A stretch of 64,000 bases of DNA, taken from IMG/VR virus record IMGVR_UViG_3300028920_000001, positions 62,001-126,000 of that record. One strand, 5' to 3'. The translations under genes were made by a program, and so were the position numbers. Positions 1 to 62,304 of this stretch are shown here, piece after piece; the first letter of the stretch is position 1, and every line of letters begins with the position of its first letter. The notes beneath the pieces are model-generated. The model worked only from the letters and a program-made list of their open reading frames with translations, was not told where the DNA came from and ran no database searches.

Positions 1-765
1 GCGTGTTTTGTGGTCTGTTCGCCATTTATTGGTTTTGCGGAATTTCTTTTTATACGGCTCGGTACCATTGCTGATCCAACGAGTTTTCTTAATTGGTTTC
101 TTGATTTGAACGTTTCGACTATACAAAACCACACGTAACTTACTTAAATCTTCAGTGACTTCATAAGTTTCGGCATGTAAATAAACTGAAGCTGGATATG
201 GATTCTTAAAAACTAAATCAAGTTCAGGATAACTAACAGTTGCATCAAACCCTCGTTTGATATAAGTCGATGGTCTCGAATGAGAAGTTCGCTGCACAAT
301 TTCCATTCCTGACATTAATGCTGCAGCATGGATTGTAGAACTTACCTGACAAGTTCCACCACCGTATTCTTCTTTAAATTCACCGAGATAAATTATGATA
401 GAAGTCATATACCCGAATTCTTCTGTTCGGGGACCTACTGTTTTATTATAAGAAAATGAATCACCAGGATGAATTGGGATCCATTCTAAATTTGCTACAT
501 TAGTCTTAATATTATGAGCTCGATTTTCATATCGGGAGGTTTTATATTTACCTACATGCTGGTAAATAGTTTCATATTCTCCCACCACATGATACTTATC
601 ATATGATTCTGGTGATTTTATTTCAGGAAAAGTAATTTCCGGCCATTTCTGAAGAACTAATAGCTGTGGCTGTGGCTGTGGCTGTGGTTCAGTTTTACAA
701 GCTGGGATTAGATAAGAGATCGTAATTCCGATAAAGACTGAGGTGAGAATTCTGATCAAATTCAT
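1..765 (-). CDS. VanW-like protein (exported/membrane-anchored), 3' end runs off the window
   Basis: Not in ORF track. Hand translation from ATG at 765 is open to base 1: N-terminal hydrophobic segment, PQPQPQPQ linker, then GGGTCQVSSTIHAAAL..GMEIVQRTSHSRP...GFDATV..ELDLVFKNP, typical of VanW domains. Confidence 0.75.
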   Translation of the reverse strand, partial: MNLIRILTSVFIGITISYLIPACKTEPQPQPQPQLLVLQKWPEITFPEIKSPESYDKYHVVGEYETIYQHVGKYKTSRYENRAHNIKTNVANLEWIPIHPGDSFSYNKTVGPRTEEFGYMTSIIIYLGEFKEEYGGGTCQVSSTIHAAALMSGMEIVQRTSHSRPSTYIKRGFDATVSYPELDLVFKNPYPASVYLHAETYEVTEDLSKLRVVLYSRNVQIKKPIKKTRWISNGTEPYKKKFRKTNKWRTDHKTR

Positions 766-1169
766 TAGCTCTCCATCACTTCAGCTATTCCAGCTAAAAG
801 AACTAAATTGTCGATTTGGCTCTTATACTGAAAAATGTACACATAGGCGCTTCGGCTACCTTGTTGACCCGTCTCAACAGCAACAAACCAAAATCGGCTA
901 CAAGTAAGATGCTTATCCTTAATGTCTGCAATTACACCTTCAAAGTTACCTTTTTTAAGCATATTTTTAACTGAGACAACACCATTCTTTTCCCAATCTG
1001 TTGAACCGGCAAAGAAATAGTAAATACAATTAAGTTCAAGAGTTTCTGTGGATAGTTTCCAACGATCTGGCTCCCAATACCGACAAAAATTCCAGGGCAC
1101 TTGATTATAAAATCGCTGCTGAGGGACTTTCTTTTTCCGTTTAGGAGCAGGATTCCAGGGCCAGTTCAT
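765..1169 (-). CDS. hypothetical protein with C-terminal VMES tag
   Basis: ORF track; ends AGIAEVMES*. Confidence 0.7.
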   Translation of the reverse strand: MNWPWNPAPKRKKKVPQQRFYNQVPWNFCRYWEPDRWKLSTETLELNCIYYFFAGSTDWEKNGVVSVKNMLKKGNFEGVIADIKDKHLTCSRFWFVAVETGQQGSRSAYVYIFQYKSQIDNLVLLAGIAEVMES

Positions 1170-2137
1170 TACTGTTCCCCAAATAGATGGGCGTTTCCAG
1201 TCTTAGTAATGATTCGTCCTTTCGGGGTTTTTTCCACCAGACCAAGCCGCATCAGGTTAGGCTCAATGACTTCCTCAATAGTATCTTTGGACTCACCGAG
1301 GAGAGAAACTAAAGTGGTGAATGCCACTGGCTGATTTTTCTCAGCCAGCACCCGTAGGTATCGCTGGGAGTTTACATCAAGTCCGATGCAATCGATTCCA
1401 AGTCGGTCACAAGTGTATTCAACCAGACGATCATCCACGATGTTAGTAACCTGTACCTGCGCAAAGTCTCGAACTCGACGCAGGATTCGGTTAGCCACCC
1501 GGGGAGTACCTCGGGCTCGACGGGCGAGCTCCTTTGCACCTCGGTCAGTACAGACCATTCCCAGCTTTTCGGCAGATTTAGTGACGATTTGGGTCAGTTC
1601 GTCTTCAGTGTAGAGCTGCATTTCGACTAGGACGCCGAATCGGTCCCGCAGTGGACGCTGCAGCATGCCAGCTCGAGTGGTAGCTCCGATGAGAGTGAAC
1701 GGCTCAAGCTTGATAGTCAGAGGCTGATTCCCTGCCACGACCTCCAATTTGAAATCTTCCATGGCCGGGTATAGGACTTCTTCGACCCGGTTGTTCAGGC
1801 TGTGGATTTCATCCAGGAAGAGGATATCTCCCTTCCGGAGGGAGGCCAAGACCGAAGCCAATTCACCCTTAGTCTTAATAGATGGGGCATTGACTACGAC
1901 CAGTTTGGCACCCATTTCGTTGGCGAGAATACCCGCGAGAGTGGTTTTGCCGAGGCCCGGGGGTCCAGCCAGCAGGATGTGGTCAAGTGCTTCCCTGCGG
2001 CTCAAAGCGGCCTTCACATATACTTCGAGATTGGCCTTAGACTCTTCCTGTCCTAGGAAATCGTCGAAGGTGGTCGGCCGAAGAGCCCGATCCAGATTCT
2101 CTTCAGTGTTATTGGTCGTCTCGTGCGTATTCATCAT
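1169..2137 (-). CDS. ruvB: Holliday junction branch migration helicase RuvB
   Basis: LRP..FDDFLGQE, Walker A GPPGLGKTTLA, Walker B ILFLDEIH, FTLIGATTRAG, ARGTPRVANR, LVEKTPKGR. Confidence 0.97.
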   Translation of the reverse strand: MMNTHETTNNTEENLDRALRPTTFDDFLGQEESKANLEVYVKAALSRREALDHILLAGPPGLGKTTLAGILANEMGAKLVVVNAPSIKTKGELASVLASLRKGDILFLDEIHSLNNRVEEVLYPAMEDFKLEVVAGNQPLTIKLEPFTLIGATTRAGMLQRPLRDRFGVLVEMQLYTEDELTQIVTKSAEKLGMVCTDRGAKELARRARGTPRVANRILRRVRDFAQVQVTNIVDDRLVEYTCDRLGIDCIGLDVNSQRYLRVLAEKNQPVAFTTLVSLLGESKDTIEEVIEPNLMRLGLVEKTPKGRIITKTGNAHLFGEQ

Positions 2138-2166
2138 ATTAATGAATACGGAACGACCAGATTCAC

Positions 2167-2493
2167 TTACGCCTGTCCGATGGGCTTACCCCAAATAGCA
2201 TCCCACCCATCTCGATAGGCTTCAGTGGCGGCTGTCGAAGGTCCTTTAGATTCTTCAGGTTCGATCTTTTTACGATTTTGCCGATAAATATATTCCATGT
2301 CAAATCGGGAATCGTTTTTTCGAGCGGTGAGTTGAACAGCATCTCCTCCAAGTAGATTAAGAGGCTTACCTTGTGGTACTGGCCGAAATTCACCTATTTC
2401 AATTCTCTTTTCAGAATCATTACATACAATTGCTACTCTCCCATTTTCAGTAGGTGGTCCTAGAATAGCATAATCTTTAGATTTCTCGGTCAT
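2167..2493 (-). CDS. hypothetical protein
   Basis: 108-aa ORF collinear with neighbours. Confidence 0.6.
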   Translation of the reverse strand: MTEKSKDYAILGPPTENGRVAIVCNDSEKRIEIGEFRPVPQGKPLNLLGGDAVQLTARKNDSRFDMEYIYRQNRKKIEPEESKGPSTAATEAYRDGWDAIWGKPIGQA

Positions 2494-2532
2494 AATATCT
2501 ATTATGCAGAGTACTCTTTTATTTACATTTGA

Positions 2533-3009
2533 TTAGCAATACATCACTAATACAATTTGCCAATATTCTTCATCAAGTATATTCTTCAAAGCTCTATTTA
2601 GAGTAGTCAGACTAATTTTATGTCGATGATTTTCTTCACTAGGTATTTGCGACTTATCAGGTGCGCCTAGATAAAACCAGGTTTCTTCAGCACCCGGTAC
2701 TTTTTCTGCTTTATTTGGATAATTTTGATAAGCCATTTCAATCAGCTTTTGCATAGCTTTTTCTGGATCAATCATCCAATGAGATGGAATCCTGAAAAGA
2801 AAAGAACCATCAGATGGATAACTTTGATCTCTTAATTCAATATTGATATGCGATGTAGTTTGATGTTCTCCTGATTCTAAATTTGCTTCCCATTCTTCAA
2901 GCCAGGCTCGAATGTGCAATCTAGGTAAGTTTGTGATGGCAATCCCATTCATATTATAATAAAAAGATTCGCTAGTGTGAGTTGCTCCCAATTGAAGTTG
3001 AAAAGTCAT
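2533..3009 (-). CDS. hypothetical protein with variant C-terminal tag (VMYC)
   Basis: ends WQIVLVMYC*. Confidence 0.65.
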   Translation of the reverse strand: MTFQLQLGATHTSESFYYNMNGIAITNLPRLHIRAWLEEWEANLESGEHQTTSHINIELRDQSYPSDGSFLFRIPSHWMIDPEKAMQKLIEMAYQNYPNKAEKVPGAEETWFYLGAPDKSQIPSEENHRHKISLTTLNRALKNILDEEYWQIVLVMYC

Positions 3010-3281
3010 GATTGCATCACCAAAATTACGGTTAACTCTTCTTCTGTCATGGAAATGGAATCATTTGGAATAAATTCGCCTTCTATATCATGATGCTCAC
3101 CAACATAATCCCGTTCGTTATGAAGATCACATCGTCCAAATATAAAAGTTAAACGTAACCGCCTACTAGTTGAATAATACCAAAATTGAGCTTTGCGCGG
3201 ACAATTACAACTACAGATTGAAGCATCATGTCCATGAAAATAAATATGGTTGGGATCAATATTTTCTGATTTAAAATTCAC
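3006..3281 (-). CDS. hypothetical protein with C-terminal VMQS tag
   Basis: ends TVILVMQS*; ATGA overlap with next gene. Confidence 0.7.
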   Translation of the reverse strand: MNFKSENIDPNHIYFHGHDASICSCNCPRKAQFWYYSTSRRLRLTFIFGRCDLHNERDYVGEHHDIEGEFIPNDSISMTEEELTVILVMQS

Positions 3282-3289
3282 TAATGAAA

Positions 3290-3601
3290 TTACACTTCAG
3301 TTTGCATTAAAAGAGCTCCGAATCCGGTCATTATTATCCGTCTTTGTAATGGCTGTTTAACCGCGACTCGAGACCACTGAAGAATACACATGATTAGTTG
3401 ATCTTCAGTAAAACACCCTCTCAAGTCTGCCATAGCTTTTTCAGCTAATTTAATTTCGTCTATATTATCAGATTGGGTAGCAACAGACTTCAGATTTTGA
3501 ATCATTTGCGCTTTAGGTATTAATTTTAATTGAGCTCGACGCTCTTTAACCTGATTCACATTTTTCGCATTCTTCGGATTCATGCCTAGGTTTATACACA
3601 C
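3290..3601 (-). CDS. hypothetical protein
   Basis: 103-aa ORF; start uncertain. Confidence 0.5.
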   Translation of the reverse strand: MCINLGMNPKNAKNVNQVKERRAQLKLIPKAQMIQNLKSVATQSDNIDEIKLAEKAMADLRGCFTEDQLIMCILQWSRVAVKQPLQRRIIMTGFGALLMQTEV

Positions 3602-5954: not shown

Positions 5955-7142
5955 TCAAACACAATTGTCTATTATTTGCCAGGGAAGGCCATACTTATTC
6001 AAATCTTCCATGAAAGGATCTGGATTTAGTTGTTCCAGACAGAAGGTCCCTACACCTTCCCATTTTCCTTCCATGATCATTTTAGCACCAATCATCGCGG
6101 GAACACCTGTAGTATAAGATACAGCTTGAGATCCTACTTCTTCATAACATTGTTCATGATCACAGTTATTGTAAAGGAATAATGATTTCTTTTCTCCCAT
6201 ATGATTAGTACCTTTAACTAAACAACCAATGCAGGTTTTTCCTTTGGTTCTAACGCCTAATGAAGCCGGAGTTGGAAGAATGAAATCAAGAAATTGAAGA
6301 GGAACAATTTCCTGACCTTTGTAAACGACTGGCTCGATTGAAGTCATTCCGACATTTTCTAAAACATGAAGATGATTTAAATATTGATCTGAAAATGTCA
6401 TCCAAAATCTCATTCGTCTGATTTCAGGAAAATGTTTAGTAAGAGATTCCATTTCTTCATGAAACATCAAATAAGCACGCCGAGTTCCAACTCCGGGAAA
6501 ATCAAAATCTCTGAAATCACTTAATGGTGGAGTTTCTTTCCACTCACCTTCCCAGTACTTTCCTTTTTGGGTGATTTCACGAATATTAATCTCAGTATTG
6601 AAATTAGTAGCAAAGGGATGGCCATGATCACCACCATTGCAATCTAAAATGTCAACGGTTTCTATTTGTTCGAAATTGTGTTTCTTTAAATAAGCAATGA
6701 AGACATTAGTTACACCGGGGTCAAAGCCGCTACCAAGTAAGGCCATGATCCCGGCGTCCTTGAACCTGTCATGGTATTTCCATTGATGAGAATAACTGAA
6801 AGTTAACTGATTTGGAGCTTCATAATTAGCAGTATCAAGATAATGAGTCTTAGTCTGAAGACAAGCTTCCATTATTTTGAGATCCTGATATGGCAAAGCA
6901 GTATTAATAACTATTTCAGGTTCATATTCTTTAATTAAAGCAACGGTTTCTTCAACATTATTAGCATCAAGTTTTTCAGCAATTACGTTAGGTGGATTCT
7001 TTAATCGTTTCTTAACGTCTTGGCATTTAGATAATGTACGACTAGCTAAAACAATACGATCAAAAATCTCTGGAACCTGAAAACATTTTTGAGCAGTTAC
7101 ATTTCCAACTCCACCGAGTCCAATAATCAATATTGTTCCCAT
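5955..7142 (-). CDS. carboxy(nor)spermidine dehydrogenase (saccharopine dehydrogenase family)
   Basis: Rossmann IIGLGGVG, INTALPYQDLKIMEAC..HYLDTANYE, GSGFDPGVTNVF, DILDCNGGDHGHPFATNFN.EINIRE, SQAVSYTTGVPAMIGA. Confidence 0.92.
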   Translation of the reverse strand: MGTILIIGLGGVGNVTAQKCFQVPEIFDRIVLASRTLSKCQDVKKRLKNPPNVIAEKLDANNVEETVALIKEYEPEIVINTALPYQDLKIMEACLQTKTHYLDTANYEAPNQLTFSYSHQWKYHDRFKDAGIMALLGSGFDPGVTNVFIAYLKKHNFEQIETVDILDCNGGDHGHPFATNFNTEINIREITQKGKYWEGEWKETPPLSDFRDFDFPGVGTRRAYLMFHEEMESLTKHFPEIRRMRFWMTFSDQYLNHLHVLENVGMTSIEPVVYKGQEIVPLQFLDFILPTPASLGVRTKGKTCIGCLVKGTNHMGEKKSLFLYNNCDHEQCYEEVGSQAVSYTTGVPAMIGAKMIMEGKWEGVGTFCLEQLNPDPFMEDLNKYGLPWQIIDNCV

Positions 7143-7195
7143 AATCTTGTCTCCTATTAGAATATAATGTCTAATAGGACTTTACGCTTTATTAA

Positions 7196-7462
7196 TTATT
7201 TTGATTCTTCGACTTTATTTGAAATAATAGCTTGTTCTTCCTCTTCCAGATCCCAATTGGCAAAATCCCAATTAGTTACAGATCTAATTTCACCACCATT
7301 TTTAGTACGACGGATAGCATAAAATCTCCAACCTTGCTTATCAAGATATACTAAATTTTTGTAAGTAGATAGAGCTCGGCGGATAGTTTCCCACTCTCCA
7401 GGCTTCTTGGTTGCCTTCTTGATATAATCAACCAAATCTTTGATGTAAGGAGGAAACTTCAC
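7196..7462 (-). CDS. hypothetical protein
   Basis: 88-aa ORF, GTG start. Confidence 0.55.
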   Translation of the reverse strand: MKFPPYIKDLVDYIKKATKKPGEWETIRRALSTYKNLVYLDKQGWRFYAIRRTKNGGEIRSVTNWDFANWDLEEEEQAIISNKVEESK

Positions 7463-7611
7463 GATTCCATTATATTTCGGACGATTTCATACCTGGTGTC
7501 AAGATGATTTAAAATCAATTTACGAATGCTCGAGCTCAATAGGACTCCTAGGAAAAATGCTATATAATGGGAACTATTTATGGCTTGTAGATAATCAATT
7601 ATCCAATCCAT
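7459..7611 (-). CDS. 50-aa membrane protein with C-terminal IMES tag (below ORF-track cutoff)
   Basis: hand translation MDWIIDYLQAINSSHYIAFFLGVLLSSSIRKLILNHLDTRYEIVRNIMES*. Confidence 0.7.
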   Translation of the reverse strand: MDWIIDYLQAINSSHYIAFFLGVLLSSSIRKLILNHLDTRYEIVRNIMES

Positions 7612-7619
7612 ATGTTATT

Positions 7620-7883
7620 TTACAATTCAGGTTTTTCTTTACATCTTTGGAGTCGAGGATTACTTTCCATCATTAGAATTAATTTAATATTCCCAACGCC
7701 AGAATAAAGATGATCTAAGTAATCCCGATCATCTAAATGAAATACCTTGGCTGCTCCCCAAACTGAAACTGACCTTCCATCTTGGAGCAGTTTAGTGGCT
7801 GAAGAACCACAAATACAAAATGTCCATTTTGAAAAAATAGATTGAAAAATATGACATTTACTACAAGTTGTGATTTTCATCAA
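7620..7883 (-). CDS. hypothetical protein (CxxC motifs)
   Basis: CSKC...CICG. Confidence 0.55.
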   Translation of the reverse strand: MMKITTCSKCHIFQSIFSKWTFCICGSSATKLLQDGRSVSVWGAAKVFHLDDRDYLDHLYSGVGNIKLILMMESNPRLQRCKEKPEL

Positions 7884-7885
7884 TA

Positions 7886-8302
7886 CTAAGATTCCATAAT
7901 TTCTTCAACTAAACTTTGATCTAGCATTTCTATAATTTCCTCTCGAGTCCAATTATAATCTTTAGCTAAAATTCTGAAAGATTGGATTAACATCTCTCTT
8001 TGTTGTTGTTTGACATATTCTGGATCATAACCATGAGTTTGAAATTCCATTCCTGATTCCGAAGCTGAACCGGAATAAAGAACAAGATCTCCTCCATTTT
8101 CATACCCCATATTTCCTCTGAATATTAAATTAGCTCCATCTGCATTAAGTTCTTCATTTAGAAATTTGATGTTTCCAGTGTTCCCGATTTCTACTTTTTC
8201 CCCAATTTTAATATGGGTGTTGGAATTGTCACAGAATTTTACAGTTCCACCCGGGCTTACCAAATTGGGATCTAATTCAGAACTATATATATTCTGACTC
8301 AT
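7886..8302 (-). CDS. hypothetical protein with C-terminal IMES tag
   Basis: ends LVEEIMES*. Confidence 0.7.
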   Translation of the reverse strand: MSQNIYSSELDPNLVSPGGTVKFCDNSNTHIKIGEKVEIGNTGNIKFLNEELNADGANLIFRGNMGYENGGDLVLYSGSASESGMEFQTHGYDPEYVKQQQREMLIQSFRILAKDYNWTREEIIEMLDQSLVEEIMES

Positions 8303-8341
8303 GTTTTAACTATACATTAAGAATTTCTAAAACCCCACATC

Positions 8342-8911
8342 TTAAGTCTCCATTACTTTTGATACGACGCGTTCTTTTTGAACTTCTTTCCAAAGACGAT
8401 TAATGTCCTGAGTAGAAAGTACATTAGCCACCTGATGCATAGTTAATTTCATAGCACGTAAATGAAGTTTGCGATTCTTACGATAAATGGCTTTATTTAG
8501 TCTATTAAGGTAAGTTTTGGTTCGAGTAGCCTGCCTACACCGTTTAATTAAATAATTGTGCATAATAGCTAATTTAGAATCAAAATGAGTCGATAGTTGA
8601 CGAGTCCGACGTAAATAAGGACGTTGACCAGATGGAACATTAAGTAATTTCATTGTAGCTTCAAATAAATTATCACAATCAGATTGAGCCTTTCGAGTAG
8701 AAAATCTGACTATCTTACCATTATATTCGAGATGAAGAAATCCTTCTAAACATTGCGCAACTCTATCAGGAGTAGCCTTTTCCCAATCATGATTTAGTTT
8801 GGAATCAAATCTAAAAGTTACTTTCTTAATGGTAATTTTGTTGAATTCCGTGATCCATTTAGCTTCAATGGCACGCCGTTTAACAGGATCACACCACTTT
8901 TTTCTAGCCAT
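8342..8911 (-). CDS. basic hypothetical protein with C-terminal VMET tag
   Basis: ends VVSKVMET*. Confidence 0.7.
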   Translation of the reverse strand: MARKKWCDPVKRRAIEAKWITEFNKITIKKVTFRFDSKLNHDWEKATPDRVAQCLEGFLHLEYNGKIVRFSTRKAQSDCDNLFEATMKLLNVPSGQRPYLRRTRQLSTHFDSKLAIMHNYLIKRCRQATRTKTYLNRLNKAIYRKNRKLHLRAMKLTMHQVANVLSTQDINRLWKEVQKERVVSKVMET

Positions 8912-8941
8912 TAAGTATGAATACGATGCAAATTTGTGAAT

Positions 8942-9358
8942 TTACGATTCCATGATCGGCTCAATCAAATGAATTTTATAAATAGAAGCTACGGCTTCTT
9001 CGTAAGAAATTCCGTAATTCCACATTGCTTTTCTGAGATCCTTTTCAAATTTAAGTATGAGAAACCAATGATTGAAATCTGTCATTTTTTCTTTAGTAAA
9101 TTCTAAATATTGATTTTGACATTGATCATCCCATACACTACAGTATTTCATGATTTGAACTCCAATATTATAAAGTTCTTCATGAGTAGGCTGATCAAAA
9201 AATGGATAATGTAGATGCATTAATTTGTCAAATAAAGTAGCCCGGTCCCAGCCATTACAAAGATGAATATCCATTTGTTGTCCAAAAATTACTATTAATT
9301 CTGCTCCTCCTTCATAAAGACTACCCAGAGATATTTGTTGGGCATCTGAAAGAGCCAT
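8942..9358 (-). CDS. hypothetical protein with C-terminal IMES tag
   Basis: ends LIEPIMES*. Confidence 0.7.
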   Translation of the reverse strand: MALSDAQQISLGSLYEGGAELIVIFGQQMDIHLCNGWDRATLFDKLMHLHYPFFDQPTHEELYNIGVQIMKYCSVWDDQCQNQYLEFTKEKMTDFNHWFLILKFEKDLRKAMWNYGISYEEAVASIYKIHLIEPIMES

Positions 9359-9546
9359 ATTTGAAATTTACAAATACTAGTATGCACCGTTACAAAGCCA
9401 CGGTGCCACGGCTGTTTTAGTTATTGCCACTAGTATTGCAATTAACACAAATAAAATCGCAATGATATACCTATCCCATCTGCCAGGACACTTATGCTTA
9501 ATTGCAGGTTCTTTTATTTCACCGCAGTTGTCGCAGTAAGCGCCCA

Positions 9547-10128
9547 TTACGAAACACAATAGTCCTTCCATGTCGAAGGAGCTTCGGACTCCTCGATTTG
9601 GATAGGAGCTAATGGCAGGTATTTTGGTTTAACTGGCTTAGAAAGCAGCTTCATACCAGCCTGTTGTGGCGTACGATTGGCCTTCTTGCTATTGCAGTCG
9701 TAACAAGAAGTCACAATGTTTGTCCACTCGGTTTTTCCGCCCTGATCACGTGGGATTACGTGGTCATAGTTGAGTTTCGACGCAGGTAACCGTTGTCCGC
9801 AATACTGACAACGGAATTTGTCTCGTGTCAGAACGTTGATCCGAGAAAATTTAGCTCCACGCTTGATATGGCTGATATTTCGCACCAGCGTAACAACAGC
9901 AGGAACCTTAATTAACAAATAGTCTCCACCATCTTGGTTGTGTTGCGCGGGTAGCGCATCCACCAGCTCTTCGAATTCCTCGAGCTGATCGAGTTCGATA
10001 CAACCAATAATTTCATCATATTCCTCGATAACACGGACCTTTCCGAGGAACATTTTAATGACAGCTTCCTGCCAGTTAATGATTTCATGCGGAGTTCGCC
10101 ACGGGGTCAAAACCAACGTTCGCATCAT
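9547..10128 (-). CDS. HNH endonuclease (McrA-like)
   Basis: FSRINVLTRDKFRCQYCG...YDHVIPRDQGGKTEWTNIVTSCYDCNSKK. Confidence 0.9.
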   Translation of the reverse strand: MMRTLVLTPWRTPHEIINWQEAVIKMFLGKVRVIEEYDEIIGCIELDQLEEFEELVDALPAQHNQDGGDYLLIKVPAVVTLVRNISHIKRGAKFSRINVLTRDKFRCQYCGQRLPASKLNYDHVIPRDQGGKTEWTNIVTSCYDCNSKKANRTPQQAGMKLLSKPVKPKYLPLAPIQIEESEAPSTWKDYCVS

Positions 10129-10196
10129 GACACACCTACCTGCGTTTCTTTTTCCTCATTTCGTTTCTCCTTCTCACCTGTGACGTGAGGGAAATC

Positions 10197-48618: not shown

Positions 48619-48692
48619 TACCCGTGATAGGATTCGAACCTACACTGTACGGCACCTAAAGCCGTCGCCTCTGCCAGTTGGGCTACACGGGC
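48616..48692 (-). tRNA. tRNA-Leu(UAG), short variable loop
   Basis: ACGGC-UUUAGGU-GCCGU, variable ACAGU. Confidence 0.88.
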
Positions 48693-50503: not shown

Positions 50504-50633
50504 TAGTGCCCCGAACAGGATTTGAACCTGTAACATCCGGCTTGAATGGCGATAACCCTTATCCTCCGGCCCGAATCGGGCAAAAAATCGGCAAGGATAT
50601 TTTACGGCGCTCTATCCGTTGAGCTATCGGGGC
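50504..50633 (-). ncRNA. tRNA-scaffold / Y-module chimera 2 (130 nt)
   Basis: acceptor GCCCCGA/UCGGGGC, D and T arms canonical; insert AUCCUUGCCGAUUUUUUGCCCG-AUU-CGGGCCGGAGGAUAAGGGUUAUCGCC. Confidence 0.8.
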
Positions 50634-50971: not shown

Positions 50972-51049
50972 TAGTAGGGGAGATAGGATTCGAACCTACA
51001 CTGTAGGGTTTTTAAAACCCTCGCCTCTGCCTAGTTGGGCTACTCCCCC
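50972..51049 (-). tRNA. tRNA-Leu(UAA), short variable loop
   Basis: AGGGU-UUUAAAA-ACCCU, variable ACAGU. Confidence 0.88.
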
Positions 51050-51070
51050 GATCTGTTGTATTATTTAATA

Positions 51071-51433
51071 GTGGATCAAAGATTAGATAAAATCACAATT
51101 CCTACTACCATAGTTGATATGTATGGAGGTGAAACTTGCTTCTTTTCTTTGAATGATATCTATGCCTCTTTTAATGCTCTTCATATACCGAATGCTGCTT
51201 CCTCTAAAAAATTTGGCTTAGTTTGCATTCATAAATTGGATCAAAGTCAATTACAAACAGACATTTTCCATGCTGTGATTCTTCAAATTAAGAAAATTAA
51301 GCGAATTCATTGGATATCGAACGACTACACCCTAATTCAAACTTTTGACTTAGTTAAGAGCCCTATTGAATATTACCGAAAAATCAAAGAATTGAAAGCG
51401 CTCCATTTAGTTCGAAATATAATGGAATCTTAA
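51071..51433 (+). CDS. hypothetical protein with C-terminal IMES tag
   Basis: start reassigned to GTG 51071 (promoter motif 6 nt upstream); ends LVRNIMES*. Confidence 0.6.
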   Translation: MDQRLDKITIPTTIVDMYGGETCFFSLNDIYASFNALHIPNAASSKKFGLVCIHKLDQSQLQTDIFHAVILQIKKIKRIHWISNDYTLIQTFDLVKSPIEYYRKIKELKALHLVRNIMES

Positions 51434-51443: not shown

Positions 51444-51734
51444 CTAAATATCATGAACTTCGTACACGAAAATTTTAGTCAAAAATTCTTCTTCTGATTC
51501 AGCAAAGAAGAACCAATCATAATCAGAATCAGAATCTATATCATCATTATATAATTGTCTATCACGTTTATACTGAAAGATTTTCATTCCATCCCCATAT
51601 TTCTCGAGTTTAGCTTGAGCTAAAGAATTGGAAACTGTAGTCCCTTGATAGACATCAGAAATAGATCTAAGATCATCTAAATTCATCTTATCGAGAACCA
51701 ATACAGCTTCCCATGGACAGGCATCGATCCTCAT
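51444..51734 (-). CDS. hypothetical protein with variant tag (VHDI)
   Basis: ends FVYEVHDI*. Confidence 0.6.
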   Translation of the reverse strand: MRIDACPWEAVLVLDKMNLDDLRSISDVYQGTTVSNSLAQAKLEKYGDGMKIFQYKRDRQLYNDDIDSDSDYDWFFFAESEEEFLTKIFVYEVHDI

Positions 51735-51961: not shown

Positions 51962-52136
51962 TCTTAAGATTTTGTTTCGCTATTATCTGATTCATATAAT
52001 CATTACTAGTATTAAGTGAAGGCTCTACTCTTCCTACTCGACGCATGCAACGAACGGCATTCATAAGTTCCTCAGCGTCATCTTCACGCATCGGTTCTTC
52101 TAAAATAACCGTAAACCCTTTGATTCGGTCTGTCAT
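51915..52136 (-). CDS. hypothetical protein
   Basis: MTDRIKGFTVILEEPMREDDAE. Confidence 0.6.
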   Translation of the reverse strand: MTDRIKGFTVILEEPMREDDAEELMNAVRCMRRVGRVEPSLNTSNDYMNQIIAKQNLKSEIYNIRYRRYKKIY

Positions 52137-52369
52137 GATTCCATCACCTGATATACATAAATTACATCCAAAATTTCTTGTTCATTTCTACGTTTCACCA
52201 TTTCTTTGGAAAAATGGAGTGTATGAGTTTCTCCCATCTTATTCCCAAAAGTAATAAGATAAAATGAGTTACCGGTCCCATCATGCTCAAATCCCATTGA
52301 TAAATATTTAATTCCATTCCTGTCTGCGACATCTTTAATCCATCGCCAATTTTTAGGTCCGTTATACAT
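52133..52369 (-). CDS. hypothetical protein with C-terminal VMES tag
   Basis: ends YVYQVMES*. Confidence 0.7.
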   Translation of the reverse strand: MYNGPKNWRWIKDVADRNGIKYLSMGFEHDGTGNSFYLITFGNKMGETHTLHFSKEMVKRRNEQEILDVIYVYQVMES

Positions 52370-52693: not shown

Positions 52694-53041
52694 ATGTTGG
52701 AAGAAATCAAAGCTCAGATGGCAACTGTTTCTTCTCGAGAGAAAAGATTAGATATTATTTATGATGTGATCGATGACGCATTGATAGCAGGTAAGTTTAA
52801 TGAAATTAACCAAATGTTTACAGAAATCAAATGTGAGGAATTTGAAGCAACTGAATTGTTAGGATTTCTAACCATCACTTTAATGGCTCATGGCCAATTA
52901 TCCAATCGTGGATGGTTCTATGATCAATGCAAAATTGAATTATTAAAAAGTCGTCCATTAACAGAAGTTAATAAAATGACAAGTGGCTTGGCATTTCCTT
53001 ATCAAGCCCAAACTCAAGCCAAGAAAATTGTTACTAAATAG
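52694..53041 (+). CDS. hypothetical protein with KKIVTK C-terminal tag
   Basis: ends TQAKKIVTK*. Confidence 0.7.
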   Translation: MLEEIKAQMATVSSREKRLDIIYDVIDDALIAGKFNEINQMFTEIKCEEFEATELLGFLTITLMAHGQLSNRGWFYDQCKIELLKSRPLTEVNKMTSGLAFPYQAQTQAKKIVTK

Positions 53042-53292: not shown

Positions 53293-53712
53293 ATGCTTAT
53301 CGAATGGGATAAAATCATTGGTATAAGCTTTAGAAAAAGAGAAGATGGTTATGATTTTATAGTCACTACTGATGAAGCATATGATGCTGCGGACGGTTGG
53401 CATGCAGGTGATGAAGAGCATACAATATTTTTTAAATCCGATTGTACTTGGCAAGATATAAGAATAAGTCTAGATGCCATTAATTATCATTTTCAGAAAG
53501 AAGTTGAAAAACAAATTCGAGCAATTACACGTAAAGTCTTTGATATCATCGGTCCTAATTTCTCTAATGAAGGACATAGACAATTTCATTGTTGGTGGAA
53601 TTGCCTTCATTTTGAAGAATTCGTATTATATTTAACTAATTATGTTAATTATGAAGATGCTTTGGAAATTTTAAATCGAATTTATTTAGTTAAATCAATA
53701 ATGGATAGTTAA
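53293..53712 (+). CDS. hypothetical protein with C-terminal IMDS tag
   Basis: ends LVKSIMDS*. Confidence 0.7.
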   Translation: MLIEWDKIIGISFRKREDGYDFIVTTDEAYDAADGWHAGDEEHTIFFKSDCTWQDIRISLDAINYHFQKEVEKQIRAITRKVFDIIGPNFSNEGHRQFHCWWNCLHFEEFVLYLTNYVNYEDALEILNRIYLVKSIMDS

Positions 53713-54065
53713 GAATTCATAACCTGATAGATAGTCCAACTCGGTGAATTTTCAAAATGTGCTTCATTGATTTCATGAATCTCGAGTCCATCATTAATTG
53801 CACATCCTAATTTATCTTGTCCCTTAGGAGTAGTAATTAATTGAGTTAAGTATTTTTCATTTGATAAATTTAAAATATTACCAAAACGACGACGTTGGAC
53901 TTGAGTAAGTCGTACAAACCAGAAATCGGATTCATTAATAGTAGCCATTCCTAAAAGAAGCGAGTTGCTATCTCGATACCATCGTACATCTTTACCTGTC
54001 ATTAAATGATAATCTCTAGCTTTATTAAGAACTTCACCTAGATCACTACACTGATGTTTGTTCAT
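53709..54065 (-). CDS. hypothetical protein with C-terminal VMNS tag
   Basis: ends TIYQVMNS*. Confidence 0.7.
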   Translation of the reverse strand: MNKHQCSDLGEVLNKARDYHLMTGKDVRWYRDSNSLLLGMATINESDFWFVRLTQVQRRRFGNILNLSNEKYLTQLITTPKGQDKLGCAINDGLEIHEINEAHFENSPSWTIYQVMNS

Positions 54066-55117: not shown

Positions 55118-55963
55118 TCATAACCTTGATGTCTTGAACAAATTCCTGCCATCTCGTTTCTTTCTGCCTGTTAGTTCATATAATGAAGTGCCATTTCTCA
55201 TTAGCCAACAATCAATTGAAATCCAAGTTCTTCCGTCAGTTGACTGACAACTTTTCTTATCCCGATTAACAATAGGGAGTCTTCCAGTTTGAACAAAGAA
55301 ATCTTTGATCCATGATTTAATTAACGGGATTGTAAATGATGGATATGAACGAGTCTTTAGACCAAGCTTCTCTTTCATATAGATTCCTGTACTCATTTTA
55401 TGATTTTTACGAATCCATTCACCAATAGTTCTCCAGTCCCATCCATTAGTAAATTCGTTGCCTTTATGCGGAACTTTTTGGTATTTTGCATAATAGAGTT
55501 TAATCCAACTATCAACAGATGCTTTGGTTAGTGGAACATGTGGTCCTTTAAAACCAATAAACTCTGGTGTTACCCTCTTAGTTTCTATCCTCTGTTTAAT
55601 TGGCTTTCTTCTATCAAATTTTTTATCTAGAGCTCGAGCTTTCTTTAAAGTTATGAGTCTCAAGTTATCTCTGCAGAAATTTAACTTATTCCCATCTAGA
55701 TGATAAATAACGTATCCTCTTTTCCCTTTCTTTCCTTTAATGAAATACTTCAGATTATGACATGGTTCTCCAATACTATGTAGAGAATGGACCTGTTTGC
55801 CTTTTTTCCATACCCACTTATATTCATTAACTCGATCCCAGTCCTTTTCATCAATTAATGCAAAATTTCCATTTCCCACTTCTATCCATTGTTTACCAGG
55901 CTTTTTTCGTGGTTTCGGATGTCCGTAGGTAGATGACGGTTTTGGCACATTATTATTGTACAT
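55118..55963 (-). mobile_element. HNH-related homing endonuclease homolog with repeated C-terminal DNA-binding-like units
   Basis: FALIDEKDWDRVNEYKW...YHLDGNKLNFCRDNL; repeated 'I.SWIK.(Y/F)...G..P...W..I..W.R'. Confidence 0.65.
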
Positions 55964-55970
55964 TAAAATA

Positions 55971-56192
55971 ATGGCTTATCCTATAGGAACTCATGTTAAA
56001 ATTAAAGAACATCATCATAGTATTGATAATGATGCCTGGTATGGAACTATTGAAAATTATGATCATGATACCACACTTTATGAAGTGAAAATTGATCAAG
56101 ATGAAATTAAATGGAATAGACTTGTATTTGAAAATGAATTCGTTATTGTTTCTCCAGATGAGCTTTTATTATTAGAAGTTATGAAATCTTAG
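55971..56192 (+). CDS. small SH3/KOW-like protein with C-terminal VMKS tag
   Basis: MAYPIGTHVKI...GTI...YEV; ends LLLEVMKS*. Confidence 0.65.
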   Translation: MAYPIGTHVKIKEHHHSIDNDAWYGTIENYDHDTTLYEVKIDQDEIKWNRLVFENEFVIVSPDELLLLEVMKS

Positions 56193-56965: not shown

Positions 56966-57373
56966 ATGGTTGACGATGAACTTGATCAATTATGGGAACA
57001 AATTCCTTGGTCTCCAGGATCATCGCATATTTGTGATGATTCTAAAGAATGCAATGATTTAATAGAGGAACAACTTAAATTCTTAGAGGAGGATCCATTT
57101 AAAGATCCATCAAATCCTCATAATGACATTGTTACGTCGGAAGCAAGAGTCTACAAGTCATTAGGGAGGCATAAAATTGAAAATGAACAAAATCATGAAG
57201 GTTCGTTTCGTGTATTATACCCAAAAAAACGAACTATATTAGTAGATCTATATGGCTTAGCTTATGAACAAGGTCGTTTTAGTACTCACTTAATAACATT
57301 GAGAAAGCAAGATGCAGAGCAACAGGTAGAAACTCGCAAGAAAGCTATTATACTTAGTGTGATGGAGTCATAA
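56966..57373 (+). CDS. hypothetical protein with C-terminal VMES tag
   Basis: ends IILSVMES*. Confidence 0.7.
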   Translation: MVDDELDQLWEQIPWSPGSSHICDDSKECNDLIEEQLKFLEEDPFKDPSNPHNDIVTSEARVYKSLGRHKIENEQNHEGSFRVLYPKKRTILVDLYGLAYEQGRFSTHLITLRKQDAEQQVETRKKAIILSVMES

Positions 57374-58142: not shown

Positions 58143-58143
58143 G

Positions 58144-58217
58144 TAGCGGGCTGTCATGGGATCGAACCATGAGCAGTGGACTTGGAAACCACTATGTTGC
58201 CATTACACCAACAGCCC
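58144..58217 (-). tRNA. tRNA-Trp(CCA)
   Basis: GUGGU-UUCCAAG-UCCAC, G73. Confidence 0.88.
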
Positions 58218-58936
58218 TAAGCCGCTTTCTTAAAGAATTTTCTGGAATTCTTTAATTTCTCTTTGTCTGTTTCATCCCAAATCTTTTTCTTACGCTTCAT
58301 GAAAATGGTTGCGTCTTTGTACATCCATTCACAGAGAAGCATTGAATCGTACTGATTAAATATCAACTTCTGAGCTTTTCCATTAGCAATCTTTTTGTTT
58401 CCCACAGGAATAAACTCACGGAGCTTCTGTTTAAAATCTTCTAAGAAATTTCCGGTGTCATTCCCGGCAGTGAAAGAAGTTCCTAAAGCAGAAATACGTC
58501 TCCCGTGTCGATTATTGTAATGCTTGTAATATATAGACCCATCCCCATCGAAATAGCCACGTACAAAATGATGAAAATACTTGTTAGGAATTTTGGGATA
58601 AGAGTATTTAAATGACTTCTTTCTAGTACCTCCAAAACTTATTAATTTATTGACCATATGATTACTTCCAAATCTAACAAATCCATACGACGATCCCCTA
58701 CCATAGGATTTTGGGTTAGAACTAATGATTTGAATCTTTTTCTTTAGTTTCATTAAATCAATTATCATTTCAAGATGATCAACATCTTTCCCAGAAAAAC
58801 TTATTCTAGCATGAGACCTCTTCCCATTCTTACGATGTCTGATGTATATACTTCCATCAGCCCACCAGAATCCAAACACGTAGGCTGAAGCTTCATTCCA
58901 TTGATCAAAGAATTTTTCGTTAACTCTCCAATTCAC
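58217..58936 (-). mobile_element. LAGLIDADG homing endonuclease, free-standing, abutting tRNA-Trp
   Basis: AYVFGFWWADGSI, HFVRGYFDGDGSI. Confidence 0.88.
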
Positions 58937-59172: not shown

Positions 59173-59448
59173 TTGTGGAGCTTGTGGATATCTAAGGTAA
59201 TTTATTTTATGTGGGTGATCCAATGTGTTAGATCCAAAATGTTTGCTTCTAAACTCAGTGGAGTTTTACCTACCTTAAGTCAAATTGATGATGCTTTATT
59301 TTTTGAAACTCGAATTGCAGCTGATGTTAAATTAACTGGTTATTTCAATGATTGGCTAACTCGCTATCCAAGTCATAATTTGAAGGATTTTACCTATACA
59401 GTAGTGCGTGCAGAAGATTTTATAGTGAGCAATGTTATGGAGTCATGA
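59173..59448 (+). CDS. hypothetical protein with C-terminal VMES tag
   Basis: ends IVSNVMES*; start probably MWVIQ. Confidence 0.65.
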   Translation: MWSLWISKVIYFMWVIQCVRSKMFASKLSGVLPTLSQIDDALFFETRIAADVKLTGYFNDWLTRYPSHNLKDFTYTVVRAEDFIVSNVMES

Positions 59449-59459
59449 CTCCATAACAT
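59432..59459. repeat. perfect 28-bp palindrome at the junction of two convergent VMES-tagged genes
   Basis: ATGTTATGGAGTCA|TGACTCCATAACAT. Confidence 0.95.
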
Positions 59460-59718
59460 CTGAAATAATTTCATTTTCCAATTGATCTATTTGCTCAATT
59501 AGCGCTTTACCTTTACGTTCTATTCTTTTATCAATCGGGCTAAAAAGCATTGCTAAAAAGGCCAGATGTACCCAAACGTCTGCAGGTTTATCCATAAATA
59601 AATAGTCATACATTCCAAGAGTTGCCATGGTGAGAAAAGTAGCACAACACCCGAAATTTAAGAAACGAATAGCAACTAAAATCCAAAATAATATATTAGC
59701 TCGGCGCAAAGACTTCAT
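59443..59718 (-). CDS. 2-TM protein with C-terminal VMES tag
   Basis: ends IISDVMES*. Confidence 0.7.
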   Translation of the reverse strand: MKSLRRANILFWILVAIRFLNFGCCATFLTMATLGMYDYLFMDKPADVWVHLAFLAMLFSPIDKRIERKGKALIEQIDQLENEIISDVMES

Positions 59719-59930
59719 GATCTCATGACTTTGCCGGTAATAATTTCAAACGCTTTCTCACCAACTTCCTCCAAACACTGGGGACAAAATCTTACTTCAA
59801 TAGTGCTTAAACCGTGTCGCATTCGTTCAGCACTTTTAACAACAAATATGTAGGTGGACGATTCATCCAGACAAAAATTACAAAATCCAGCGTCCCTCTG
59901 ACTTACTTTTACAATAGATATATTTTTCAT
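59715..59930 (-). CDS. zinc-binding small protein with VMRS tag
   Basis: CNFC..CPQC; ends ITGKVMRS*. Confidence 0.7.
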   Translation of the reverse strand: MKNISIVKVSQRDAGFCNFCLDESSTYIFVVKSAERMRHGLSTIEVRFCPQCLEEVGEKAFEIITGKVMRS

Positions 59931-60310
59931 GATTCCATGATTTCCTTAACTGTCAAGAAATACCGCGATTCCCTACGGATTTTCATTATCAATCTCAGAA
60001 ATTCCCACAATTCAACTTCTTTCACAAAATTAACTTGTGAATGAGTCGTATAAATGTTCATAGTAGTAATATCAACTGGAAGAAGTGGTCTCTTCACAAT
60101 CACTACAGCTAAAGTTCCATCAGCTAGTTTATGAACCAAAATTGGCCCGACTCTTTTTCTAAAAGCGTAATTATGTAAATAAACTAAGCCACTACTATCA
60201 ATTAATATATCTGCATAATGACAAAAACAACATTCTCCATTTTGGAGAGTGCTAACTTGCTTATCATATTCAAATAAGATACTAGTAGTGTAACCCTCAG
60301 GTTGGCCCAT
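59927..60310 (-). CDS. hypothetical protein with C-terminal IMES tag
   Basis: ends TVKEIMES*. Confidence 0.7.
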   Translation of the reverse strand: MGQPEGYTTSILFEYDKQVSTLQNGECCFCHYADILIDSSGLVYLHNYAFRKRVGPILVHKLADGTLAVVIVKRPLLPVDITTMNIYTTHSQVNFVKEVELWEFLRLIMKIRRESRYFLTVKEIMES

Positions 60311-61135: not shown

Positions 61136-61166
61136 AAGTCAATTTACATTTGCGCCCTAATTTGCA

Positions 61167-61238: not shown

Positions 61239-61254
61239 ACGCGTCCGGCCCATA

Positions 61255-61354
61255 TAGTCCGGGAGATAAGATTTGAACTTACGATAACCATCCTTCAACG
61301 GCCCGTACACGGGCAAAGAACGATGGACGGATGGCCGCCATGGCCAACTCCCGG
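61255..61354 (-). ncRNA. tRNA-scaffold / Y-module chimera 3 (100 nt, no anticodon stem)
   Basis: acceptor CCGGGAG/CUCCCGG, D-arm GGCC/GGCC, T-arm GUAAG-UUCAAAU-CUUAU; insert UUCUUUGCCCGU-GU-ACGGGCCGUUGAAGGAUGGUUAUC. Confidence 0.75.
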
Positions 61355-61365
61355 GTAGCCGATCA

Positions 61366-61791
61366 TTGATCGGTGTAATCTTTTTCGTGAGTAATAAAGT
61401 AGTTAAAATAAATAAAAGTGGAGTAACAGGAACTATTACTCATTTAGATGCAGTCATGAAAGAGCTTGCTAATTTTTTACAAAATAGCGAATTTGCTTTT
61501 GTTAATTATATAGATTTGGCATTCATCAATGATTTGATAGTAAAAGCTCCTAACATTAATGCCACTATTTCTGAGTCCCTTTATACCCCAAGAAATATTA
61601 CCATTTTTGGGGTTAGGCTCGAGCGTTATAGTTTTATTCCACAAGGTTGGGTTTTCGCAGCTGATACCAAACCTAATTGTTTATCTGATTTACTGTCAAT
61701 GGACTGCAAAAAGATTCCATATGAAGATGACGATCCTTGGATTTTGGAAACTGAAGACCTGGTTCGTGTTTTCATTATTATGAATATGTAG
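61366..61791 (+). CDS. hypothetical protein with variant tag (IMNM)
   Basis: ends VFIIMNM*. Confidence 0.6.
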   Translation: MIGVIFFVSNKVVKINKSGVTGTITHLDAVMKELANFLQNSEFAFVNYIDLAFINDLIVKAPNINATISESLYTPRNITIFGVRLERYSFIPQGWVFAADTKPNCLSDLLSMDCKKIPYEDDDPWILETEDLVRVFIIMNM

Positions 61792-61863
61792 TACCCCCGG
61801 AAGGAATCGAACCTTCATCTCATGATTAGGAATCATGTGCTTGATCCATTAAGCTACGAGGGC
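61789..61863 (-). tRNA. tRNA-Arg(CCU)
   Basis: CAUGA-UUCCUAA-UCAUG. Confidence 0.9.
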
Positions 61864-62304
61864 TTAAATGTGCATCACTTCTTCACATTGAAGCATCTGT
61901 TTAAGATAAGTCTTATTCTTTATTCCCTTGAATAGCCAAAATGGTAAAAATCCCGGCCAAGATCCGGTTTTACGAAGAATATCAGGTAAAGGACCGGATT
62001 CCACAAATAGGTGAGCATATTTTGTCCAACACAATCCAATTGAAATTGTATATGGATCTAATCGACAGTATGAAATAAATAAACAACCATTTTTCTTATT
62101 TAACTTCAAAAGAGCTCTGGCTACGTTCAAAATTAAGCTTGATTCTTCCCATGGCGTCATAAGTGATCGAAATCGTTTTCCATTTGGAGCAATGGTTACG
62201 TCAATCCATTTATTTTCATCCCAACTAAAACCAATAATTGATTTTCCCTCTTCCCAATCATAAATGGCAGACCCAGGCCCAATACAATCAGTCCACAGCT
62301 TCAT
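61864..62304 (-). CDS. hypothetical protein with variant tag (VMHI)
   Basis: ends QCEEVMHI*. Confidence 0.65.
   Translation of the reverse strand: MKLWTDCIGPGSAIYDWEEGKSIIGFSWDENKWIDVTIAPNGKRFRSLMTPWEESSLILNVARALLKLNKKNGCLFISYCRLDPYTISIGLCWTKYAHLFVESGPLPDILRKTGSWPGFLPFWLFKGIKNKTYLKQMLQCEEVMHI

Follow-up and report, generated by a model that had tools for sequence, protein, structure and literature searches.

An eight-residue C-terminal tail on unrelated small proteins across a group of huge phages

Introduction

Why should dozens of small phage proteins with no other similarity end in nearly the same few residues? The question is raised by 64,000 nucleotides of DNA (the window; 38% G+C) covering positions 62,001 to 126,000 of IMGVR_UViG_3300028920_000001, a viral contig of 426,960 bp. 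An initial annotation described small, unrelated proteins ending in [VI]-M-x-[ST] and proposed that this C-terminal tail is a genome-wide signal read by a single receptor. Following the tail through the window and into related genomes indicates that it is maintained as a peptide, that it is confined to the free C-terminus, and that it changes between genomes in step on unrelated proteins. These properties point to a tag that is probably recognized in trans.

An eight-residue tail fixed at the C-terminus

A six-frame scan of the window for open reading frames (ORFs) of at least 30 amino acids returned exactly 34 that end in [VI]-M-x-[ST]-stop, all where they had first been reported. The accompanying near variants are likewise all present: nine end in [VI]-M-x-x (VMYC, IMRC, IMTI, IMEL, IMEI, IMNV, IMTL, IMNM, and VMHI), and five deviate further (LMNL, VHSS, ILES, IMVAW, and VHDI). 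The frequency lies well above chance. In a greedy non-overlapping set of 152 ORFs (19,762 amino acids), 32 carry a [VI]M.[ST] end against about 0.05 expected, an expectation derived from the six internal copies of the same 4-mer in those 19,762 amino acids. Only two of 289 shadow ORFs have the tail, and one of these (12356-12688) is probably a real gene. Two ORFs are doubtful as genes: 41121-41402 on the minus strand (93 amino acids, IMLS-TAA), overlapped by a longer ORF in another frame, and 3250-3360, which spans only 36 amino acids.

The consensus of the tail is [ILV]-[VI]-x-x-[VI]-M-[E/D/N]-S, and about a quarter of the small, mutually unrelated proteins of the phage and its relatives carry these eight residues. 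In a C-terminally anchored alignment, information content exceeds background solely at positions -8 to -1. The hydrophobic positions -8, -7, -4, and -3 follow an i, i+1, i+4, i+5 spacing and fall on one helix face; position -2 is E, D, or N, and the last residue is S in 82 of 85 tails, or A, T, or G in relatives. Some tails have a proline at -5, and many are preceded by a helix N-cap-like S/T-x-x-E. Across 47,803 residues of ORFs from the clade, [VI]M[EDNQ]S occurs 69 times; 67 of these copies are precisely C-terminal, and offsets 1-11 have none. The tail keeps a constant distance from the stop codon and from the free carboxylate.

Selection on the peptide rather than the DNA

For the main motif, selection acts at the peptide level and not on a DNA word, in agreement with the initial annotation. 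The codons for V, I, and E in the tail follow genome usage. The terminal serine is encoded by TCA (18), TCT (6), TCG (3), AGC (2), and AGT (2), including the individual AGC and AGT sites named earlier. TAA, TAG, and TGA all occur as stops, at the frequencies seen in non-carriers. At -3, histidine (CAY) can substitute for methionine (ATG). The same tail peptide is found in genomes of 38%, ~50%, and 60% G+C, the motif uses a single reading frame throughout, and its frequency is the same before overlapping starts, short or long spacers, convergent genes, and tRNA genes. A DNA or RNA element consequently fails to explain the main motif.

A nucleic-acid signal at gene ends (a recombination site, a terminator, or the ribosome-binding context of the next gene), of which the peptide would be a by-product, could appeal to the over-use of TCA for the last serine (18 against 7 expected), to four convergent gene pairs whose tails overlap in palindromes, and to a minor tail, KKIITK, that is nearly invariant as DNA. 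The TCA excess is a secondary effect, resulting largely from the arrangement TCATGA, in which the ATG of the next gene overlaps the stop codon. Set against the third codon positions, the mixture of TCN and AGY serine codons, the CAY variants, the G+C range, the single frame, and the irrelevance of downstream context, the nucleic-acid reading of the main motif is largely refuted, and its probability is close to nil. A fixed DNA word, palindrome, or recombination site is ruled out by codon usage, G+C range, and the histidine variants. As a Shine-Dalgarno or coupling signal, the GGA/GGAG within ATGGA[AG]TCATGA would lie just 2-3 nt from the overlapping start, and a signal coupling to the next gene was rejected given that convergent genes, tRNAs, and long spacers follow the tail just as often.

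Carriers with little mutual similarity

Small, unrelated carriers and the absence of the tail from enzymes with cellular homologues had both been claimed at the outset, and BLASTP, phmmer, and Pfam searches bear this out. An all-versus-all BLASTP comparison of the carriers gave one weak pair, and phmmer on bodies stripped of their last 10 residues gave only a few two-member paralogue groups. No carrier reached a Pfam gathering score and no Pfam family is shared among them; conversely, none of the ORFs that do reach this score is tailed. RuvB, sigma-70, PurB, Dam, Ro60, the NspC-like protein, and EF-Tu all lack the tail. Descent from a single paralogous family is unsupported by the few pairs that the bodies yield, and a very remote common origin is possible.

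Carriers are mostly soluble. Three have a clear transmembrane (TM) segment with the tail following a basic stretch, which implies that the tail of these proteins faces the cytoplasm. Carrier genes occur throughout the sampled regions and on either strand, interspersed with tRNA and metabolic genes; the sampled DNA showed no capsid gene.

Conservation across a huge-phage group

IMG/VR was scanned with the DNA words GTNATGGAATCATGA and GTN7GTNATGGAATCNTGA. Most matches were isolated chance ones without motif-ending ORFs; the exceptions are a handful of large contigs, including several other regions of the source contig, 3300032782_000001 (436 kb), 3300012980_000004 (393 kb), 3300036766_000359 (193 kb), and 3300048997_000225 (132 kb), among others. 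One 11-kb stretch of 3300032782_000001 (L045) has tails on 17 of 33 ORFs. A near relative from another sample (L121) shares 80-97% protein identity with the window phage and has tails on non-orthologous genes as well. In seven orthologue pairs between the two (81-96% identical), 55 of 56 tail residues are identical. No close relative by DNA was found among 50,697 GenBank phage records. The tail is a trait of a whole huge-phage group, not of a single genome; its scope had been understated, as it extends to this group and is joined in the window by a second tail, KKIITK.

Conservation also reaches deep into individual families. A 246-amino-acid carrier (9681-10421 of L027) has an orthologue in 3300032782_000001 at 23% identity, and both end in VMDS. 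Its family, A2 (~240 amino acids), gained 99 members from a profile search of 1.84 billion representatives from public metagenomes, each member representing a 50%-identity cluster. Of 101 proteins fetched, 92 end in [VIL][MHLQ]-x-x, with the chain stopping exactly two residues past the M-3 position, and 30 match the strict motif. Taken as 97 members with a mean identity of ~20%, the family has V-7, V-4, and M-3 within its 25 most conserved columns. An AlphaFold2 model built with the family alignment (predicted local distance difference test score, pLDDT, 93) places the C-terminal helix at residues 205-245 of 246, making the tail the last two turns of this helix; the predicted fold has long N- and C-terminal helices around a beta-rich domain. 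The family has no match in PDB, Pfam, or PHROG, nor among GenBank phages.

A second family illustrates variation at -3. The Zn-ribbon-like carrier at 34607-34927 on the minus strand, a basic CPxC...CHxC protein of 106 amino acids, ends in VFQVMNS (VMNS-TGA), and its relatives end in VEAVHKS (P0102, VHKS) and VEEVHQS (P0104, VHQS). Its AlphaFold2 model is uninformative (pLDDT 46).

Dialects of the tail

Further genomes were reached through the contexts of distant A2 members and through a shared marker gene, DUF2201. Residue -3 separates them sharply: Met-type genomes (the source contig, 3300032782_000001, 3300012980_000004, and L260) have 137 M against 16 H/Q, and the His/Gln-rich genomes L262, L264, and L276 together have 18 H/Q and just 7 M (Fisher p = 2.5e-10; heterogeneity chi-square 62, p = 1.5e-11). 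In a tail definition that ignores -3, this position holds M in 179, H in 25, Q in 16, L in 4, and other residues in 5 of 229 cases.

More divergent forms occur in three other genomes. VM.S is almost absent from L283 (3300024054_000008) and L286 (3300032053_000010), where 11 of 49 and 9 of 22 ORFs, respectively, end in [VLI][VIL][EDNK][SG] against ~0.05 expected, frequently with threonine at -7 (T..V[VIL]ES). In L287 (3300033066_001736; 27% G+C), 14 of 40 ORFs end in [VIT]F[KEGST] against 0.14 expected, typically as K-x-K-x-x-V-F-K. Orthologues of VM.S carriers in L283 end in SVIES, SVLSS, and EVLDR. The A2 member of L283 ends in TSEVLDR, the dialect of its own genome, and aligns to its very end with TSEVLD opposite V..VM. 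(hhalign 98.4%). These counts and orthologue ends show that tails change together, both on unrelated proteins within a genome and on orthologues across genomes. Judged from sequence, such genome-wide co-variation is what one co-evolving reader per genome would produce.

A second, basic tail

A second tail, K-K-I-[IVF]-T-K-stop, occurs on seven dissimilar small ORFs. Six lie on the minus strand between 10824 and 14858: 10824-11003 (59 amino acids, PKKIIVQ-TAA), 11000-11218 (72, PRKIITK-TGA), 11215-11400 (61, PKKIITK-TGA), 11397-11564 (55, PKKIITK-TGA), 13023-13223 (66, AKKIITK-TAA), and 14631-14858 (75, TKKIFTK-TAA). The seventh is at 52694-53041 on the plus strand (115, AKKIVTK-TAG). Unlike the main tail, this one is almost invariant as DNA, with AAGAAAATTATTACTAA present three times, and recent copying is accordingly possible. 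The peptide resembles the basic K..[VI]FK dialect that dominates L287.

Comparison with known terminal signals

ClpX reads five classes of degron, two of which are C-terminal, namely ssrA (C-motif 1) and MuA (C-motif 2) (PMC12723719). The phage tail resembles such degrons in being short, placed at the exact C-terminus (67 of 69 copies at offset 0, as in C-motif 1), and portable between unrelated proteins. It departs from the L-A-A of C-motif 1, having M/H/Q at -3, E/D/N at -2, and S at -1, of which only -3 and -1 fit loosely. A hydrophobic -3 and a small final residue also mark the ssrA type, whose terminal LAA is non-polar and unstructured. While the ssrA tag is added by transfer-messenger RNA (tmRNA), the phage tail is encoded in the gene itself, on at least one gene in five, and differs from one related phage to another. 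Its end may be helical, as it is to the last residue in the pLDDT 93 model; the second model (pLDDT 46) is uninformative, and proline occurs at -5 of some tails. One of the two C-terminal ClpX classes is basic, a parallel to the pairing of VMES and KKIITK here: MuA-like C-motif 2 has basic and then hydrophobic residues at the C-terminus, and P-K-K-I-I-T-K, which looks similar, may be a candidate of this type.

Other parallels come from protein packaging. Encapsulin loading peptides may be N-terminal or internal and are rich in Gly, Ser, and Leu, and the HK97 maturation protease has a C-terminal capsid-targeting tail. The capsid targeting sequence of T4 is short, amphipathic, hydrophobic, and Glu-rich and routes small proteins into the head; the [VI]-x-E of the phage tail is similar to (L/I)-x-E, the site of the T4 prohead protease. 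Unlike the C-terminal tail on many proteins, the signal of T4 is N-terminal, cleaved, and found on few. Encapsulin cargo carries a short conserved C-terminal peptide that loads it into an HK97-fold shell and is sufficient on foreign proteins (PMC7355545). A short terminal peptide common to otherwise unrelated proteins is equally what the phage carriers have, although encapsulin cargo genes are few and adjoin the shell gene, whereas the phage carriers are scattered and have a strictly terminal tail of different sequence. More than 50 gene products are reported for the capsid of the giant phage SPN3US (PMC10052503). Extrapolation from the sampled quarter of the genome puts the number of carriers per phage genome probably well over 100.

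Tiny free-carboxylate motifs with degenerate consensus and lineage-specific preferences, each read by a single receptor or pocket, include the peroxisomal targeting signal PTS1 (SKL-COOH) and the proteasomal HbYX motif. These are eukaryotic or archaeal and have other sequences, and a receptor of this type is not known from phages or bacteria. The RxLR, PEXEL, and Dot/Icm C-terminal signals each address many unrelated, fast-evolving small effectors through one short motif; they belong to cellular pathogens, are mostly N-terminal, and serve known secretion machines, whereas the phage tail is not known to take part in translocation. A PDZ-type ligand, one of the possibilities first put forward, is unlikely: the last residue is small and polar (S in 82 of 85) rather than hydrophobic, and the hydrophobic residues at -3, -4, -7, and -8 follow a helical pattern instead of alternating at 0/-2. 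With ribosome arrest peptides the tail shares a fixed distance to the stop codon, and it lacks their lineage invariance and regulated downstream gene.

Literature searches for a signal of this kind yielded no proteome-wide C-terminal motif in phages, and one on capsid targeting in jumbo phages gave nothing comparable, in keeping with the first impression that the tail matches no described phage signal. C-terminal signal peptides are a familiar class; what is unfamiliar is a tag that a virus encodes on at least one fifth of its proteome, in lineage-specific dialects.

A proposed co-evolving reader and its alternatives

Strict terminal anchoring, peptide-level selection over deep divergence, unrelated carriers, and co-variation between genomes argue that the tail is a tag read in trans by a co-evolving protein. 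We infer both the existence of this reader and its action, and give the general tag-plus-reader model a probability of roughly 65%. In this model, the tag, [ILV]-[VI]-x-x-[VI]-[M, less often H/Q]-[E/D/N]-[S/A]-COOH, would work as a peptide at a free C-terminus only. The hydrophobic residues would line one face of a two-turn helix, the end of which would be completed by the acidic or amide residue, the small residue, and the carboxylate and would dock into one trans-acting reader per genome, probably phage-encoded. Such a reader would select a large, fast-evolving set of small phage-specific proteins and ignore enzymes and structural proteins, and its co-evolution with the tag could give rise to the dialects VM.S, VH.S/VQ.S, T..V[VIL]ES, and K..[VI]FK; the basic KKIITK tail may be a second tag class. 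The ribosome or a highly conserved host protease is unlikely as the reader, since neither would readily give such dialects.

Several points weigh against a dedicated reader. The single receptor originally proposed gains indirect support from the genome-wide co-variation of dialects, but no such protein was identified; in the ~200 kb sampled, where most ORFs were never scanned, no protease, PDZ, or ClpX-like gene was seen. A MoxR-type AAA+ ATPase paired with a DUF2201 metallopeptidase-VWA protein is conserved in the huge-phage group (L260, L262, L264, and L280-L287) near tail-rich arrays and is the only conserved neighbouring module, yet it was rejected as the reader for lack of a specific association with the tail: the tail-less L285 has it too, as does E. 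coli phage rV5 (L288), where the pair has ~25% identity and small ORFs have no common tail. The vWA domain of Ro60 was set aside as not universal. Known unfoldase degrons are unstructured and have two non-polar last residues, whereas the tail is predicted to be helical with a polar end. Co-variation could stem in part from lineage-specific gene expansion or from gene conversion of tails. Gene calls rest on our ORF heuristics, with starts taken as longest-ORF guesses, and on the collection's own calls for three loci, and about a quarter of the 427-kb genome was read, together with small parts of relatives.

What a reader would do with its carriers is a more tentative matter. Our slight lean is toward timed turnover, a possible but far from probable output in which the tag would hand small accessory proteins to an adaptor or an AAA+ unfoldase-protease, as ssrA and MuA-type tags do for ClpX. 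By analogy, this is suggested by the confinement to the exact terminus, the small final residue, a hydrophobic -3, carriers limited to small accessory proteins, and two tail classes reminiscent of the two C-terminal classes of ClpX degron. Loading into the virion is an alternative of almost equal likelihood: the tail would attach to the procapsid interior, the scaffold, or the portal, and a large set of small effector-like proteins would travel in the capsid and enter the next cell together with the DNA. Carriers do look like an effector repertoire, being small, fast-evolving, and unrelated with one short motif in common, and a capsid or scaffold reader would diverge fast, fitting the dialects. 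Encapsulins, whose HK97-fold shell recognizes cargo by a C-terminal peptide, set a precedent (PMC7355545), and giant phage capsids hold many packaged and ejected proteins (PMC10052503). Yet one fifth to half of all ORFs are tagged in some regions (17 of 33 in L045), a large number of species for one capsid; TM segments occur in a few carriers; and carriers sit among tRNA and metabolic genes, not beside head genes. Encapsulin peptides, moreover, may lie off the exact terminus, from which the phage tail is never displaced. Docking to some other hub is an unlikely output.

Explanations without a trans-acting reader fare worse. That the tail is a structural terminal helix inherited from one ancient small-protein family, and kept alike by duplication and gene conversion, is improbable, though it would suit the tandem arrays of carriers of similar length, the few detectable paralogue pairs, the N-cap-like S/T-x-x-E, the one good model in which the tail is the mere end of a long helix, and the nearly fixed KKIITK DNA, as recent copying would give. 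The bodies, however, range from 45 to 290 amino acids; among them are Zn-ribbon-like, TM, and large alpha/beta proteins, between which no similarity is detectable. A purely structural helix is also disfavoured because it need not stop at a fixed residue, two past the methionine, in unrelated folds; synonymous sites in the tail are randomised, against recent conversion, and orthologues switch dialect along with unrelated neighbours. More improbable still is an effect in cis, in which the last eight residues of the nascent chain, held in the ribosome at the stop codon, would tune termination, release, or re-initiation. The distance to the stop codon is fixed, eight residues roughly span the peptidyl-transferase centre to the upper exit tunnel, a Shine-Dalgarno core (at -16 to -6) precedes only 16 of the 128 window ORFs, and the phage encodes EF-Tu, tmRNA, many tRNAs, and a tRNA with a UCA anticodon. 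Against this stand a stop-codon usage equal to that of non-carriers, with no release-factor bias; an equal motif frequency ahead of convergent genes and tRNAs, a setting in which re-initiation plays no part; and a highly conserved ribosome tunnel confronted with sharply different dialects, including the basic K..VFK.

Carriers and variants in the window

The following carriers are given with length in amino acids, terminal residues, and stop codon. On the minus strand, the series begins with 765-1169 (134, VMES-TAA, Ser encoded by AGC), 3006-3281 (91, VMQS-TGA), and 7459-7611 (50, IMES-TGA), in which a hydrophobic segment precedes the tail. It continues with 7886-8302 (138, IMES-TAG), 8342-8911 (189, VMET-TAA), and 8942-9358 (138, IMES-TAA), a weak paralogue of 53293-53712, and then 11908-12099 (63, VMES-TGA). 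The carrier at 12356-12688 (110, VMNS-TGA) overlaps a plus-strand shadow ORF and fits the minus-strand gene array, while 13220-13564 (114, IMDS-TGA) has Zn-ribbon matches below threshold and is followed by 13539-13787 (82, IMES-TGA). Further along are 21676-21960 (94, IMNS-TAG), 26244-26459 (71, VMES-TGA), 27494-27733 (79, IMDS-TAA, Ser AGC), 28885-29211 (108, IMES-TAA), 30412-30792 (126, VMES-TAG, Ser AGT), the largest carrier at 31530-32372 (280, IMNS-TAA), 39237-39524 (95, IMHS-TAG), 41706-42032 (108, IMQS-TAA), 46254-46496 (80, VMNS-TGA), 52133-52369 (78, VMES-TGA), and 53709-54065 (118, VMNS-TAA). Three lie close together at the end: 59443-59718 (91, VMES-TGA) with one predicted TM segment, 59715-59930 (71, VMRS-TGA) with a CxxC right before the tail, and 59927-60310 (127, IMES-TGA).

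Plus-strand carriers are 31265-31543 (92, VMNS-TAA), 45989-46267 (92, IMNS-TAA), 48394-48618 (74, VMGS-TAG), which has a tRNA directly 3', 51035-51433 (132, IMES-TAA), whose body is paralogous to that of 59927-60310, 53293-53712 (139, IMDS-TAA, Ser AGT), 55956-56192 (78, VMKS-TAG), 56966-57373 (135, VMES-TAA), and 59173-59448 (91, VMES-TGA). Four convergent pairs have overlapping tails, at 31530-31543, 46254-46267, 53709-53712, and 59443-59448. The first joins 31265-31543 and 31530-32372 in the palindrome ATGAATTCAT; the second joins 45989-46267 and 46254-46496; in the third, the stops of 53293-53712 and 53709-54065 overlap; and in the fourth, 59173-59448 and 59443-59718 meet in the perfect palindrome GTTATGGAGTCATGACTCCATAAC. 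The two palindromes encode M-N-S or V-M-E-S on both strands.

Near variants on the minus strand are 2533-3009 (158, VMYC-TAA), 11561-11911 (116, LMNL-TGA), 17708-18148 (146, IMRC-TAA), 18163-18591 (142, IMTI-TGA), 29192-29554 (120, VHSS-TAG), with histidine at -3 as in the H/Q dialect, 34200-34610 (136, ILES-TAA), with leucine at -3 and Ser AGT, 39526-39804 (92, IMEI-TAA), 43816-44235 (139, IMVAW-TAA), with one extra residue, 51444-51734 (96, VHDI-TAG), and 61864-62304 (146, VMHI-TAA). Those on the plus strand are 31008-31268 (86, IMEL-TGA), 48678-49013 (111, IMNV-TAG), 49768-50019 (83, IMTL-TAA), and 61366-61791 (141, IMNM-TAG).

Other features of the window

The window is densely coding under the standard genetic code. 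Its genes include sigma-70, RuvB, PurB, Dam, Ro60, a polyamine gene pair, a partial EF-Tu, and several homing endonucleases, along with 24-26 tRNA genes and one tmRNA. The tmRNA gene (13832-14185, minus strand; Rfam 106 bits; tag peptide ANDNASLAIAA) sits within an array of tail-bearing small genes. A tRNA of normal length at 18541-18615 (minus strand) has the anticodon UCA, which would read the UGA stop; the idea of opal suppression that it raises was rejected, as all three stop codons terminate carriers, with frequencies like those of other genes. Two matches to the Rfam tRNA model, of 127 nt each (33979-34105 and 50507-50633, minus strand), were not reported by ARAGORN and may be intron-containing tRNA genes.

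Five genes of homing-endonuclease type, all without the tail, lie at 9547-10128, 26452-27525, 35051-35869, 55118-55963, and 58217-58936; two are HNH, one is GIY-YIG, and two are LAGLIDADG, one of these with an AP2 domain. The polyamine pair comprises 5955-7142, of the saccharopine-dehydrogenase family (carboxynorspermidine synthase type), and 27747-28871, of the Orn/DAP/Arg decarboxylase family (NspC type), both on the minus strand, which suggests phage-encoded synthesis of norspermidine or spermidine. The best cellular match of the phage RuvB (1169-2137, minus strand) is 62% identical and lies on a 103-kb contig binned to Lentisphaeria (L124), the second best being 52%; the match either hints at the host or reflects mis-binning of a phage contig, and the neighbouring genes there are uninformative. 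The word TGTAAATT occurs ten times on the gene-bearing minus strand and once on the plus strand, with several copies just 5' of starts (9365, 18155, 30831, and 40187), and may be a promoter or initiation element. A scan of 7000-15000 for sigma-70 promoters and terminators gave no excess over shuffled controls.

Implications

Huge phages hold hundreds of small genes without assigned function, and the tail offers a first means of placing much of this "dark" proteome in one functional class; a shared tag predicts a single machine that handles all carriers. The broadest form of the idea, to which we give even odds, is a protein-addressing code of huge phages, in which more than 100 small unrelated proteins per genome would be tagged, with at least two tags here, dedicated phage-encoded and co-evolving readers, and a common fate, be it co-injection from the capsid, delivery to a phage-built compartment, or scheduled destruction. 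The dialects amount to a natural co-evolution experiment, and the question of the receptor is approachable both by computation and at the bench. Identifying a reader would uncover a further level of phage cell biology (sorting, timed removal, or effector co-injection) and provide a portable eight-residue tag for engineering, and the C-terminal dialect rule could then classify phages and flag accessory or effector genes in metagenomes.

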